Below are positions 7,534 to 23,088 of a stretch of DNA of 64,000 nt, piece after piece; positions within the stretch are counted from its first letter, which is position 1, and every line of letters starts with the position of its first letter. Below the pieces are notes generated by a model. The model was given only the letters and a program-made list of their open reading frames with translations. It made no database searches and was not told the origin of the DNA. This stretch comes from Auanema rhodensis (lineage: Eukaryota; Animalia; Nematoda), in contig OZ059897.1 in assembly GCA_964057225.1 (NCBI GenBank), forward strand, positions 15,686,001 to 15,750,000. Reading direction: 5' to 3'. Position numbers and translations under genes: made by a program.

Positions 7534-10500
7534 CTTGAGCATGAGAGAGAAAGAGATAGTATTAATTGAAAGTAAGAGATCTATGATATCACTTATAAGA
7601 TAATCAAAGGTATACATATATATTACTACATACATGCACCTTTCGCAACTGAAATTTGAAGAGTCTTTGTAATTTAAAGTCTTAGTATTGAAGTATAGAT
7701 TGTATAAAATAGAAAATGAAAACTAAAATAGCTATGGATATCCAAATATACCTTCATGTACAAATATGTCACAAAGTTACTAAAGGAATGAATGCATTCA
7801 GTTGCTCAGCTATTTTGTACAGACTCGTAACTTTTTTCTAAAAACAATAAAAGTATAATGAAAAACGAGAAAAAGAAAAATTGATAAGTAGGAACATTTT
7901 ATTCTTCTTCATCGTTCTTGTCATCAAATCATCTTATTATGTATTTAGTTTCTAATATAATATTTTTAATATTACTTATAACCCTACAAATATCTTGGGA
8001 ATTCAAAAAAAGAACAAACAATCTACAGCTGAATATCAATTTCCTTTTTCGTTTAAATTATGTCATTCACTGTTAGAAGTGAGAAAATACTTTTAATATT
8101 AAGTGTATGAATAGAAACTTTTTTAAACTTTTGAGTTAGGATTGAACGATTATTCATAAACTAAAACAGGTTGAAAAACGCATAAAAGCCGACCTAATAA
8201 TGGAAGAAGTTGGATAAGGAAGTTATGATGAAAAGGAAGCAAGAGGAAAAGTTAACCTTCAGCTAGTCTTTCACCTTATTCAGACTACATTCTGCGGTCG
8301 AAAGGTGTCCACATACTTATTCACTTACTCATGGCTACCAAGATGCAGAGCATGAGAGGATATGGAGAAAGGAAAGAGAAAACGAGAGAAAGAGAGAGAA
8401 GTATTTGAAGAGATGGAGTCAGAGAGGTAGGAAGATAAAACCATTTGAACAAATGAACTGGAACAAGCAAGCTGATTTACTATTCAAAAGCTTATTACTT
8501 GCACTTTGAACCTTCTCAAACACAAAACAATATTAATTTGTATTTGTGTATAAATTTAAGGATTGTTTTGCATGAATATCGAATGAATAGGTTTATAGAT
8601 CTGTGAAAATGAAATATGAGAAGAAAAAACAGAACAAAGCAGTATACCAAAGTTTGACAAGAAAGATCGAGAGTATGTTATAAAAGATCAAAAACATCAC
8701 ATTGTACAAAATAATTTTATATTTTAATTTTAATAAAGATATATCTAAATATTAATGAATCTAATAAAAGTTTGTTCAATGTCTTTGACTTTATTGTTGT
8801 TTTCTTGTTGACATTTACATAAAAATCAAATTTATTATAAAAAAATATTTGTATTTAAAATTATTCATAGATATGAATACAGTATTCGAAATCATTAAAG
8901 AATCTCTTTTTTCTTTATTCGTTTTTTTTGTAAATATAAATGGAATTAGTAACAAAAGGATGAATTGATATAGTATATTGCAAATCTGACATCATTCAAA
9001 TTCTTTCAGGTAAATAGAACATAATCTATGTCATACCTATATGCTTACATATACTATATACAATATATAAATATATTTTATGCAATTATAATATGTTTCA
9101 ATTATAAGAGTAAATGATTTTTTTTGTTTTAAATGATAATAACAAAATATATTTGTTATATGCTTGAAATATATTGAAAAGTAATATGGTAACTGAGTAA
9201 ATTATCGAAAATTGAAAAGGCTGCTTGTGAAAATTCATATGAAAATTATCAATCACAGAAAATAAAGGCAATTATTTATCATTCGAGTACACAAAAAGAA
9301 AGAAAAAAAACATAATACTTTTTAAATTTGAACATGGAAATGTCAACTTCGGGAAATTAAGAACGAATACAAGATTCGTTCAAGATTCAGTAAGTCTCAC
9401 GTGTATTTAGAGTATGTATAAATATTATGTTTACGTATAATTAAAAGAAACTAGTAGATCAAGAAGTAGACGACTAATATGAAGAAGAAAATAAATGTTA
9501 TGCAATAACTAGTGAAAAAAAGTCAATGAAATAGAAAAAAATATAAGAAAAAACAAACGTTTGTGCATAGTATACATGCTCTCATCGTATATGTGTTAAT
9601 GACCTATCCATAAAAAAAATTTATCTTCTAACTATCTTGAAAATAATTATTGAAAACATACATAAATATGTATTGTACATCACATGATATTCATTCCAAC
9701 TAATAGCATTAAAAGGCAAATCTTTTGCTCAAAATTATTTGAACGAACTTTAAAACAGGAATTGTCACAGATTTATCTCAAGAAATTATTCATATTTCAA
9801 GATTAATGAAGCCTCTTTTTAGGGATTTTTTAGGTAGAGCTGTGTGTAAATTCATTATGAATGAGAATATGTCAGATTGTTCTTTATATGTTTTAGAATC
9901 TATCTTCAAGATATATGTGCGGGAAACGTCAAATAAATAACATAGAAACCAAGTGGGAAATTTCAGAAAAAAATAAGTGCAACGATCATTATATCAGATA
10001 TCTCATTTTCAAAGAGCAATCTTATAGCGTTGACGAATATAGAAATATGACACCGGGAACTCTGACTATCTTTCTATTCAATCGGTAGGTTAGCCGTAAA
10101 AACCTGATAATTGGTAGCTTAGGAAACATATAATTCAAGCCTTATTTAAAAAGATAAAGATTCTTATATGATCATATGCGATAAATTATCTAAAGTTAAA
10201 AGCAAGAAAAATATTTTTTCTCACAATTTATTATAAAGCATAAGAGGTTCACAGCTGCGGAAGCTCGGCCCAATCGATGCTGCGCCTGAATGAGCTCCAG
10301 ACAGCATGAGACGTGTGTGTATGGCTGTGTGTGAGTTTGTAAGTGTGATTGTGTATATCTGTACACTTTTTTCAGTACACGAAATGAAATGACCAAAAAA
10401 ATAGAATTTTTCTTAACAGATAAAATCATGTTGTAAACATTCGATAACTTCTTATATAAAATTTTATTCGTATTGAAAAAGAAATTATAGTGGTAAACGC

Positions 10501-11061
10501 ACATTCAAAAAAAACATGGAATGTCATGAGCTAAAAGATCAAACTAAAAATATCACCATCAAATTAGAGCAATGGGTATAAGCAAAGAATAAACGGAAAT
10601 GTTTTCGAACGGTATTTTGAACTTTTCACAAAAACATGGCAGAAGGGTGTAGGCTTTTATTTTTATGAAATTACATAACTTGCATGTTCCCAAAACAAGA
10701 AACAATACATTTCTTCTTATTAATTTTCATTTAAACACCTCTTGCTTCAATTAGTTGTTGCAATTACCCCCATTTCCCTAAATAAATATTTTAATTGTGA
10801 CATTAGACCATGAAAATAACTCTTTGATTTATTTTTACTGAATTCCTAAACTAAATAATATTTTTGAAAAAAATAAGAAATGTTCACAGGTTTTTATTGA
10901 AAGAAAATATACTGATCCGTTCCCTTTTTACTCTTTTCTTTTTTTTTATTACAAGCAAGATGATTCTACTAAAAAGTGTTGATCAAGAAATAATTAGCAA
11001 GTGTTGTGTGTTGATTTTCATAAATCGTATCATTACTTGAACCAAAATGAACCTATTACTA

Positions 11062-11456: not shown

Positions 11457-14400
11457 ATGGAACGATTTGCCTTTTTCGAATGCCTTCTTAGAAGCGTCGA
11501 AGAAGATGAATCCCCCAATATTAAGAAAGCCGGTACTTTTGCCATGACTATTACGTTAATTAAAGTTTTGCTTTCAGGCACTAAATTTGAAAATACTGTT
11601 GCCAGTGTTTTACCTCATCATCCTAGTGTTCGTTCCGCTCAAACAGAAAAGTCTCTTACTTCGAATAAGTTCAAAAATGAATACCAGAAGTTTGTACTCT
11701 GTTCTGCTCTCTTAATATTCGGTTATTTTCAGATTTTATTCTGATCTTGTGGGTTCTGTTCAAAATAAAAGCCTAATAGTAAGGCACAAACTATGTTCTG
11801 CACTATATACTTTGGAGAATATTGTACGCCTTATAGGTATGACTAATAAACAATAGCTTGTATATGGAGTAATTTAGATAAAAGAAAAATATATTATCGT
11901 TGTTTATTAGCGTTTAATATATTTAAAGATTCTAATGGTACTTTAACATCAAGCCATATCGAATTAAGTAAGGAATCTTTGTTTTCAAATGATTCAAGTT
12001 ATAGTAATAATGCGCTACAAATGATATTAGACGGTTTGCTCTTTTTTTATTTTTTGAAGTTTATATAGTTCTCATTTAGCTGTTGTACTTATCCGAGATA
12101 CCGTGGGATTAAAAAATCTTCAAGATGCTTTTGCTCCTGCATGGGATGCGATTAGAAAGCTGAAAAACCCTGCCGATAAAGACATGGTAATAACAGGGTC
12201 CATTCTTGCTGAACCTTACAGGTACCACAGTTTTTCAATAACTCTGTACTGCCTGTTATATCAGTTACACACCTACTATGATGATGTCTCGTGTTTTTAC
12301 TGCTCTTGCTCATCAGTATGAATGTGCAGCCTCGGATTTGACAATTTTCAAAGATAAACCAAAGTAAAACTGCATTATATTATATCTCATATGTTACTGA
12401 TTTAGAACTGTGGTGATTAACGAGATAGAATCAAAATCGACTGAATTGAATTCATCACAAGAAATTGGTTTTAACGACCCTGGCCCTTCAACTTCTTACA
12501 CAACTACGAATGCCCTCGATGATGTAAATTTATTGAAACTATTTTTTTATAAGTCATTTCAAAAATAACTTAGGCTCTTAATGCTCAAGGAATGAATTGT
12601 TTGAAACTTCTCTCTTCGTTGAAGCAGGCTTTTCCAGACACATATGAAGAAGTAGCAAAATATCTATTTCAATTAATTGAGTCGACTAAGTCCAATGCCG
12701 AACTGCAGGAAGAAGTGTGTTTAATCCTTTAGAAATGTATTGACACTATTAATATTTTCTATATTATAGGTCACAAACTTGTTAGGATTTGATCTCATCG
12801 AGTTGGCAATTTCTATTCTAGAAACTCGAGAGGACCTCTCAGCCGAAATTAAACGTAATAGACAAAAACCAGTAGATATAAATAGATTTGATCAATCATT
12901 ACAAGTGAGTTTTCTAATGTTTTATGCAATACGTATTCCGCATAGTTTCAAAATAGCACAGTTGATTGATATGATCACTATACCCATTGTAACATAATCA
13001 TAACCTCCCTTGAAGCATCTTTCTTGGCAAATATATAACTCTGAAGCCTGAAATGACTAGTATGCATACTTATCAATATTCATGCAAAATTCACTGTTTT
13101 GGCTTTTTCAATACTTTGTTCGCTACACCCGATAACTGTACGAAAGTTCTGAAAGCATTTGTATATCAAAGTATGATAAGATCCTCAACACCTGTAACTT
13201 CTTTCGCCAAATATGAGAAGAAATGTAACTGAATGGGAATTCAGAGTAGTTATTCGGTACTAAGGAACAAGATGTTTTATAGCCTTCTCCTAAATGTTGA
13301 TAAATATCCCTAAAATAACGTAAATATATTTAATTTTACCTGTCCAAATACAACTATTTGTACTGTTAATAAGATCTGTATTCAATAAAAACCCTGAAAA
13401 CGTATCGTCCTCACATAGTTCTTCTCGTATTGTCAGAAGTGTAGCGTTTTCTGAACTTTTACTAAACAAAAACTTATAGAATTGGTTTTTTTATATGGAA
13501 TCAATGTACCTTATGTATACATATACGCTGTTGCTTAATTCTGTTAATGCCGCCAATGTTACAGCCGCATTTTTCATTTTTACCCATTTTAAGCTTCTGC
13601 ATTTTCACTTATAGTTTTAAAATGTTCAACTTCTCACACTTCCTTCAAACAAAAAATTCCCTTGCCACAATGAACATTTGAAATAGAACTTGCTTGTAAA
13701 CCTACTGTTAATAACATTATTAATATAACCGCTTTCATGTTCTACAATTTCTCAAATGAAACAAACACAGTAGTTGTATGCTAATTAGTCCGATTTTGAA
13801 AATAATCTCTTTTCAGCTTGATCCTGTACGTAACAATGGTCCGGTATATTGTCAGCAGGTGACTGTTCAAACTAAAAGAGAAGTAGAAATTCGAAAAGAA
13901 ATGAAACGAGAACAGAAACGAATGAAGAAGGAATGGTCAAGGTATGGTGCTATTGATGTTTAGATCTTGAACTCATATTTTAGGATTCAAAATGCTTTCG
14001 GAGATGAAGAAAAATTAGAATTAGAGCTAGCACAAAAGGAGATGGAGAGAGAAAGGTAACCTTTTTGTTGATAATAGCTTAGTATATATTCTGTAGACAA
14101 CTCGAAATTGATCGACTAAAATGGACACCAACTTTGCGATCAGGACAAGTTCGAGAAACTTATCCTTTTGTCTTTGATGCTCGTTTCGAAAGTGGTTTCG
14201 CAGCGGGACTCAACAAGGTACACGGATTTTCCTATTTTGTGTTCATGCTTTTTTTCTTAGTCTTTTCTACCAGAAGGCTCGTTTCAAGAGGTTTATAATA
14301 GTCATGATCTTGTTGTTGTGCCAGCTGTAAAAAAAACGCCTGTAGGTATGGACAATGTGTATATAAACCAGTTAGATGAGGTGTGACAAAGTCGATATTT

Positions 14401-21735: not shown

Positions 21736-23088
21736 CTAAAAACTCTCTAACTCATTTTTATCACTTGCTATCATGACCCACTCATTTTCGTCTCCAGCAC
21801 GGTCAGCTTTCCTGATGTTATCCTACAATACATATTGAAGTACTGAGGACAGCATGGGGTATCTATTTACTAACTAGATGGGGAATGACGACATCCTGGG
21901 AAACCATAACAGATGCTCTAGCAGCAGACTGAAAATATAAGTGAAAATAAAACGAATTATAAGGCTTTGAAACCTTCATTTGTTTGATTTCTTCAGTCCA
22001 GTCTTCTTCAGCAATTCTTCCTACAGACCAGATAAAGAGTTTCTTTGCTTTTTCAGAATTCTGTTTAAAAGTCTCCATAACTTGTTCCACAGATACCTTA
22101 ACACATATTCATTAAAAGGAAATATAATAATTAGCCTACGTGCTCCCCCTCTTTCCAGCAATCATAATCAGTTACAAGAGCAACTGAAACATATGGAATT
22201 CCAAGCTCTTTAGCAAGAGCACACTAAGATATCTAATTAATACAACATAAAATTTTAATTATTCACTTCAGGCATCATTGTCATGTTAACCAAGCTTGCT
22301 CCATATGAACGAAAAACTTTACTTTCAGCCTTGGTAGAAAAACGAGGTCCTTCGATGCATACACCAAATCCATCAACATGGTGAGCAAATCCTAATTCCT
22401 TAGCACCACTGATCATAAGCTGAACAAAAATGTAAGTTTCTAATTTTTCAAATTTCATTACTTTTCTGAGTTTATTATTATAAACTGGATGCATTTGGAT
22501 ATGACATACTCCTGGGCATTCCGGACGAGTTCCATCAAAAAATGTTGAAACTCTTCCTGATGTTCTGGAATGTGCTCCATATCATATCAATCGACATAAT
22601 TCTCTGTAAAAAAGGGACAGATAAGAACAAACCTATCAAAAACAGAATCGGGGAACACCAAATGACCTGGTTCGATATGTTGTTGAAGAGAACCGCAAGC
22701 AGTAGAAGCAATAATGACCGAAGCCCCTTTATGAAAACTATTATAGGAAATTTTTAAACTCGTTCAAACCTAGTTCCATCAAACCCCAAAGGTTAGCACG
22801 ATAATTTACGTTTCCTGGCATAATTTCATGCTTTTTACCATGGCGAGAAAGTAAAATACAATGAACTCCGCGAATTGTACCTGTATTAACTTCATTTTAT
22901 CTCTATTAACAAGAAAAACATGCCAAGAGTAAATTTGCCACTTGGTTTGCCAAAAGGAGTATTGACTTCAATCTTCAAATAAAGCCACATAAAAAATATT
23001 TAACAACCTGAAATACCTCATGAGGATCCTGAAGAATGTTGGGATCCTCAAGACCTGAGCCACCAATGATTCCTACTTTGAAAACCAT
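21736..23088 (-). CDS. MTAP: S-methyl-5'-thioadenosine phosphorylase (PNP/MTAP family)
   Basis: [71 protein letters not shown]. Stop is at 21736 if the last 52-nt intron is spliced, or at 21863 if it is retained. Confidence 0.95.

Follow-up and report, generated by a model that had tools for sequence, protein, structure and literature searches.

A gene nested antisense in an ASCC3 intron of Auanema rhodensis encodes a predicted membrane-anchored, cysteine-rich protein of a small nematode family

Nested genes of animal genomes, in which a full transcription unit lies on the other strand within a host intron larger than its neighbours, are the closest described arrangement to the locus reported here. 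The locus is in a 64,000-nucleotide (nt) stretch of the nematode Auanema rhodensis (GCA_964057225.1, contig OZ059897.1, positions 15,686,001 to 15,750,000; hereafter the window), in which an intron of the gene for the helicase-like protein ASCC3 holds a second gene, read from the minus strand. Like the described cases, this gene sits whole and in opposite orientation in an enlarged intron, and the arrangement is kept in Auanema sp. JU1783 also; unlike them, it is packed unusually tightly, with its coding span filling 90% of the intron. Two kinds of described protein are relevant to its product. SPE-12 of Caenorhabditis elegans is a 255-amino-acid (aa) single-pass membrane protein of the spermatid surface that belongs to the spe-8 group and has no recognisable domains (PMC10136096 Table 1; PMC4105102; bioRxiv 10.1101/206441). 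The predicted product shares with it the character of a small, domain-less, membrane-anchored cell-surface protein of nematodes (PMC10136096, PMC4105102), but differs in length and shows no sequence link detectable in database searches. CAP/SCP proteins (PF00188) are similar to it in being secretory-pathway, Cys-rich, alpha/beta proteins, and the family described below differs from them in giving neither a Pfam nor a CAP fold match and in lacking the CAP signature motifs. With a probability of roughly 80%, we consider the locus to be an independently transcribed antisense nested gene, encoding a predicted membrane-anchored protein with a Cys-rich ectodomain that belongs to a nematode family and is not demonstrably related to SPE-12.

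The nested gene spans 12922-13738 on the minus strand. Assembled by script from the window sequence, it comprises six exons with a coding sequence of 588 nt and a product of 195 aa, and its five introns (41, 48, 50, 43 and 47 nt) all have GT..AG ends. A preliminary description of the window had proposed this six-exon antisense gene; the model was rebuilt exactly, the product agreed letter for letter with the one given there, and the introns were confirmed as joints in RNA contigs. The same description had remarked that the gene escapes open reading frame (ORF) detection, and indeed a mechanical ORF list gave nothing over it except fragments of at most 59 aa. The RNA evidence consisted of contigs from four runs (X1-X4) of one 2019 study with coded samples, placed on positions 12500-14200; the runs are taken as RNA because their contigs are spliced. 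The exons are as follows.

13638 to 13738, minus strand: exon 1, with the ATG at 13738-13736, the predicted signal peptide and the first Cys pair (C24, C30); joint 13596/13638 seen in X1 and X3.
13510 to 13596, minus strand: exon 2, 87 nt as in Auanema sp. JU1783; joints on both sides seen in X1, X2 and X3.
13340 to 13461, minus strand: exon 3, the best-conserved part, containing NST..CIWT; 122 nt as in JU1783, and 59% identical to the JU1783 protein P0002.
13192 to 13289, minus strand: exon 4, 98 nt as in JU1783; joints seen in X1, X2 and X3.
13095 to 13148, minus strand: exon 5, with the NFR..IGCSE motif, whose F138, R139, I142, G143 and C144 do not vary across the family; joints seen in X2 and X3.
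12922 to 13047, minus strand: exon 6, 126 nt as in JU1783, with the juxtamembrane C..RC, the predicted C-terminal hydrophobic anchor and the TAA stop at 12924-12922; joint 13047/13095 seen in X2 and X3.

All five introns were covered by contig joints across X1, X2 and X3 (13047/13095, 13148/13192, 13289/13340, 13461/13510 and 13596/13638). These joints showed CT..AC on the plus strand, equivalent to GT..AG on the minus strand, and the minus-strand splicing predicted for the gene was thus seen at every intron. No second copy of the gene was found in the species' own genome (181 Mb, 112 contigs), where only the locus itself matched, and Rfam and repeat scans of the host intron returned no matches.

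The host was examined at the exons on either side of the nested gene and at the introns lying within 12500-14200. The relevant features are given below.

12905 to 13816, plus strand: host ASCC3 intron, 912 nt with GT..AG ends, enclosing the whole nested coding sequence; joint 12904->13817 seen in X1, X2 and X4.
12770 to 12904, plus strand: host ASCC3 exon preceding the long intron and separated by 17 nt from the nested stop codon; orthologous to about 10845-11141 of L002, the ASCC3 locus of Auanema sp. JU1783.
13817 to 13939, plus strand: host ASCC3 exon following the long intron, with 78 nt between it and the nested ATG; orthologous to 9666-9917 of L002.
13739 to 13816, minus strand: 5' flank of the nested gene, 78 nt, with a TTGTAG acceptor-like site ending 3 nt before the ATG.

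One host exon scored 119 bits against human ASCC3 and 112 bits against yeast Slh1, compared with 88 bits against BRR2, and Pfam found SNRNP200_wHTH and DEAD; because of the difference in scores, the host is classed by sequence as ASCC3/Slh1-like rather than BRR2. Splicing had removed the 912-nt intron from contigs of X1, X2 and X4, those of X1 and X4 being 6.7 kb long. The nested coding span occupies 817 of its 912 nt, with 78 nt between the nested ATG and one host exon and 17 nt between the nested stop codon and the other, which bears out the earlier statement that the intron is almost wholly taken up by an opposite-strand gene. That statement had also called it the sole long intron of ASCC3. 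The adjacent host introns measure 50, 55, 42 and 41 nt, so the contrast with the neighbours holds within 12500-14200, and uniqueness along the rest of the gene is consistent with the 6.7-kb mRNA. Given such tight packing, the promoter and 3' end of the nested gene should be minimal or overlap host exons, or its 5' end should be trans-spliced.

Features at both ends of the gene are in keeping with this. An X3 contig extends to 13742, 4 nt upstream of the nested ATG, and its end lies 1 base beyond the TTGTAG site (window 13739-13745), which may be a trans-splice site for spliced-leader addition. At the other end, CATAAA overlaps the nested stop codon (window 12921-12926) and AATAAA occupies the same place in Auanema sp. 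JU1783; this could be a putative poly(A) signal, with cleavage near the host exon border. The placement of the two elements suggests a transcription unit trimmed to fit in the intron. As for expression relative to the host, the depth of nested-gene contigs was equal to or above host depth in X2 and X3, and X4, with host depth similar to that of X1, had no nested-gene contig listed. Because the ratio of nested to host contig depth varies among the four runs, the data point to regulation separate from that of ASCC3, contig depth being a poor measure. Upstream of the JU1783 orthologue, four ACGTG(A/G) motifs were noted within 92 nt of the ATG (L002:9910-10000), with none in the 78-nt 5' flank of the window gene; they may be a lineage-specific promoter element or may be due to chance.

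An exhaustive HMMER search (phmmer) with the 40 aa of exon 3 against 1.84 billion representative proteins returned a single credible match, which was also the single eukaryotic one: P0002, a 156-aa 'unnamed protein product' of Auanema sp. JU1783 (GCA_943334845.2), with E 3.7e-6 and 59% identity over the exon, at the equivalent position. Bacterial type IX secretion (CHU_C) proteins (P0001, P0003, P0004 and P0005) reached E values down to 5e-16 with the same query and were rejected as homologues. On realignment they show 11-15 tandem repeats of about 47 aa, resembling TINQIICEGETFQGY, of which the best score about 4-11 bits each, and their E values are sums of chance matches that are individually below significance. 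When short exon queries are run against huge libraries, tandem-repeat proteins are therefore a trap, as weak matches are summed.

In JU1783 the public annotation breaks the host ASCC3 into two gene calls, a DEAD/Sec63 product of 1093 aa and an N-terminal part of 380 aa (L002:4993-12252), and the gene for P0002 is found between them in antisense orientation. A tblastn search with the host exons flanking the nested gene in the window showed that the same exons flank the JU1783 gene. As these exons are orthologous, the two genes occupy the same ASCC3 intron, which falls at Q|L(D/N) in the host protein. The public JU1783 model reads through the fifth and last donor and lacks exon 6 (L002:10001-10795), and a rebuilt model gave the following orthologue.

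10001-10095, 10139-10225, 10268-10389, 10430-10527, 10573-10626 and 10670-10795 of L002: exons of the rebuilt JU1783 orthologue, encoding 193 aa.

Exon lengths in JU1783 were 95, 87, 122, 98, 54 and 126 nt, compared with 101, 87, 122, 98, 54 and 126 nt in the window, and all intron positions and phases were identical. The preliminary description had proposed looking into the orthologous ASCC3 intron of related species, and in JU1783 that intron holds the orthologue in the same orientation and with the same gene structure. The two proteins are 44% identical, keeping all ten Cys residues (10/10) and the NST sequon, and their tail, GYDY....IIS.NCA.LK.CGIRI, is strikingly conserved. Between the coding sequences, the proportion of nonsynonymous differences (pN) was 0.37 and that of synonymous differences (pS) 0.86, which is saturated, and identity at the three codon positions was 54/70/34%. 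Because of this codon-position pattern and the low pN relative to the saturated pS, the comparison identifies protein-level coding constraint on the nested gene. The flanking N-terminal region of the host is 60-64% identical between the two species, compared with 44% for the nested product, and the nested gene is therefore evolving more rapidly than this region of ASCC3.

Taken together, the nested gene is a genuine protein-coding gene. Features of this kind are ordinary, and its interest is modest: it corrects the annotation by adding an expressed, conserved gene that plain ORF listing overlooks and that was not found in that collection, and it defines an orphan family.

Profile searches were then built from P0002 and the well-aligned window exons; alignments in which MAFFT misplaced exons 1, 2 and 6 as short pieces were discarded. 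The searches recovered four members in Steinernema hermaphroditum, two in S. carpocapsae and two unnamed MetaClust sequences, with E values from 1e-12 to 1e-74.

S. hermaphroditum members: QR680_018718, QR680_000445, QR680_018709 (P0008) and QR680_006499, 195-205 aa.
S. carpocapsae members: L596_025631 and L596_025478.

Family members are about 193-215 aa long, and the window protein is 23-28% identical to those of Steinernema. In an alignment of 10 sequences, 21 positions were invariant (C24, C30, A45, L78, C79, D81, G86, L89, C100, C111, W131, F138, R139, I142, G143, C144, E157, C161, R164, C165 and G169), and all eight ectodomain Cys are among them; the N-terminus of one sequence, P0006, is apparently mis-called. 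The window protein, P0002 and the Steinernema members share a predicted signal peptide, the motifs LC.D...G..L, C(I/V)(W/R), FR..IGC and E...C..RC..G, and a predicted C-terminal hydrophobic anchor. Full-length similarity, the Cys framework, and the N- and C-terminal hydrophobic segments, as judged from hydropathy, alignment and structure prediction, thus place the window protein in the family of P0002 and QR680_018718. The Steinernema members differ in that there are several paralogues, in that QR680_018718 is un-nested, located outside ASCC3 in S. hermaphroditum, and in that the tail motif NCA.LK.CGIRI occurs only in the window gene and JU1783. Judged from these similarities, the family spans at least Rhabditina (Auanema) and Steinernema (Tylenchina), and nesting in ASCC3 is common to the window species and Auanema sp. 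JU1783. P0008 was found on the same 18.2-Mb chromosome as its paralogue QR680_018718.

The outcome is a small nematode family that is characterised by an invariant framework of eight Cys and has neither a Pfam model nor a structural match. The preliminary description had offered a small surface-protein family as its fallback, and this is the reading that the evidence supports; the family was already present in databases, as hypothetical proteins. Since members occur in Auanema and S. hermaphroditum, both genetically tractable, the function of the family is testable.

We next considered the architecture of the product. Hydropathy showed a signal-peptide-like N-terminus and a hydrophobic segment running to the C-terminus, between which the window protein has eight ectodomain Cys, with two further Cys in the tail, and three N-glycosylation sequons (NAT, NST and NYS), all of these features except the tail Cys having been listed in the earlier description. 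The NST sequon is shared with the JU1783 orthologue and is not kept in Steinernema. Structure prediction of P0002 by AlphaFold2 (AF2) from the two-species alignment was unusable, with a predicted local distance difference test score (pLDDT) of 49. Prediction of the member P0009 from a 13-row family alignment gave a pLDDT of 79.6 and a predicted template modelling score of 0.68, and the model combines two long helices with a four-stranded sheet and a pair of short helices, and has a confident helix, 176-194, at its C-terminus.

On this basis, the 195-aa product would enter the endoplasmic reticulum by a cleavable N-terminal signal peptide, with cleavage probably near A16/S18, as the sequence and AF2 suggest. 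The ectodomain of about 150 residues is predicted to adopt the alpha/beta structure seen in the P0009 model, to be locked by four disulfides that the eight invariant Cys probably form, and to be N-glycosylated, with the NST sequon in common with JU1783. A C-terminal hydrophobic helix would then tether the protein to the membrane, presumably as a transmembrane helix with a cytosolic tail of at most 9 residues bearing two Cys. Because the sequence bears no catalytic signature and hardly any of it would be cytoplasmic, the product is most likely a binding module, extracellular or luminal, in the form of a ligand, co-receptor or auxiliary subunit signalling via a partner membrane protein.

Alternatively, the C-terminal hydrophobic stretch could be a cleaved glycosylphosphatidylinositol (GPI) attachment signal, and the mature protein a GPI-anchored surface glycoprotein. 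The hydrophobic segment reaches the C-terminus, or comes within four residues of it, in every member; invariant G169 sits 4-6 residues before it, and the G-I/L/V-G of Steinernema fits small residues at omega and omega+2. In the window gene and JU1783, however, G169 is followed by Y-D, a poor omega+1/omega+2 context. The tail IIS.NCA.LK.CGIRI, with its Lys, Arg and two Cys, is strongly conserved, as is rarely the case for a signal that is cut off but usual for a functional transmembrane and juxtamembrane segment, and AF2 places a confident helix in the C-terminal segment. Because the tail is so strongly conserved between the two orthologues, we favour a transmembrane anchor, and consider GPI attachment possible but the less probable mode.

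Several points weigh against the picture of a transcribed nested gene for a membrane-anchored family protein. The RNA evidence comes as contigs of one study with coded samples, with strand read from the ends of the spliced introns and expression gauged from contig depth. The signal peptide, disulfides, glycosylation and topology are predictions, from heuristics or AF2. The P0009 model was built on about 9 effective sequences, and three of its five models had pLDDT below 65. The known members of the family are uncharacterised, hypothetical proteins, and no match by sequence or fold was found for the family: Pfam gave nothing relevant for five of the six window exons and eight family members (E<=10), the best hit of a search of PDB sequences with the family profile was a chance match to adiponectin at E 0.074, the ESM Atlas gave no match when searched by features and by structure, and Foldseek and VIA searches with the family model found no fold match. 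A literature search by gene tags found nothing. The AF2 model by itself is no proof of a new fold.

A more far-reaching version would make the family a nematode-specific surface module, with a fold new among solved structures and at least as old as the split between Rhabditina and Steinernema. Its role would be that of a co-receptor or ligand specific to a stage or tissue, and one lineage would have locked it in an ASCC3 intron, with transcription interference between host and guest. We regard this as speculative and, as a whole, unlikely.

The preliminary description had also suggested that the product is SPE-12-like. In its full form, the suggestion would be that the protein is a divergent homologue or orthologue of SPE-12, acting at the spermatid surface in spe-8-class sperm activation, where SPE-12 is needed to activate hermaphrodite spermatids and to localise SPE-8. 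SPE-12 offers a general resemblance only, being also small, single-pass, cell-surface and domain-less (PMC10136096; PMC4105102; bioRxiv 10.1101/206441), and fast-evolving sperm proteins can escape sequence searches. Nevertheless, the exhaustive phmmer search with exon 3, where most of the proposed motif lies, gave no Caenorhabditis and no SPE-12-named match, an indirect test by database search. One sequence search and two profile searches, all word-indexed, at E<=10 found only Auanema, Steinernema and the two unnamed proteins, and the length window of the last search, about 107-341 aa, covers the 255 aa of SPE-12. The family is shorter than SPE-12, at 193-215 aa, with its anchor at the extreme C-terminus. 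Of that motif, the parts TxLSxxV and TLxxI are not kept even by the JU1783 orthologue.

Expression gave a further, weak indication. SSP-type MSP-domain genes located in the species' own genome were used as a sperm proxy, being sperm-specific by homology only and scored by contig presence in coded samples. X4 best covered a sperm-type SSP gene (share 0.57), yet had no nested-gene contig. The nested gene was strongest relative to its host in X2 and X3; the SSP share of X3 was 0.36 and X2 was not among the four runs listed, a pattern opposite to co-expression. There is thus no sign of sperm-linked expression, and this evidence, weak as it is, leans against a sperm role. We conclude that homology to SPE-12 is very improbable; a very remote relationship, in the bolder form of an SPE-12 relative outside its genus, found no support, and the tempting suggestion that the gene bears on the origin of spe-8-type sperm-activation signalling is set aside as unsupported.

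When the species' own genome was searched for the Pfam MSP domain, at least 12 exon-sized matches were obtained, the best at 52 bits (loci L008-L013, e.g. L009:1380-2018 and L012:638-1695). Those that were read are SSP-like or VAP-like, and no canonical full-length MSP gene stood out among them. A 255-aa product on the minus strand at L003:15389-16248, without a Pfam match, was noted 5 kb from a Steinernema family member; it happens to equal SPE-12 in length.

Less probable still is a degenerate CAP/SCP-domain (venom-allergen-like) protein. The UniProt name of P0008, 'SCP domain-containing protein', points that way, and nematodes have abundant CAP proteins, which are secreted and rich in Cys. 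Against this, neither Pfam CAP (PF00188) nor any other relevant family matched the eight members at E<=10, no CAP structure appeared among the Foldseek or VIA matches though many are in the PDB, and the CAP signature motifs were absent on inspection of the family alignment. The 'SCP domain-containing' name looks unreliable, and an obvious CAP/SCP domain is ruled out by the predicted structure of P0009.

Finally, a non-coding antisense RNA that regulates ASCC3, with the ORF incidental, would suit a gene placed antisense within its host, 17 and 78 nt from host exons that its untranslated regions or promoter may overlap, but is effectively refuted by cross-species conservation of the protein, since the frame, intron phases, exon lengths, all Cys and the codon-position pattern are kept with JU1783 and homologous proteins are encoded outside ASCC3 in Steinernema.

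The very tight and conserved antisense nest offers a clean system in which to study transcription and termination of a guest gene within the intron of its host. Elsewhere in the window, an exon-sized ORF at 22255-22494 on the minus strand matched the PNP_UDP_1 purine/uridine phosphorylase family (E 6e-8) and belongs to a separate minus-strand gene downstream of ASCC3.

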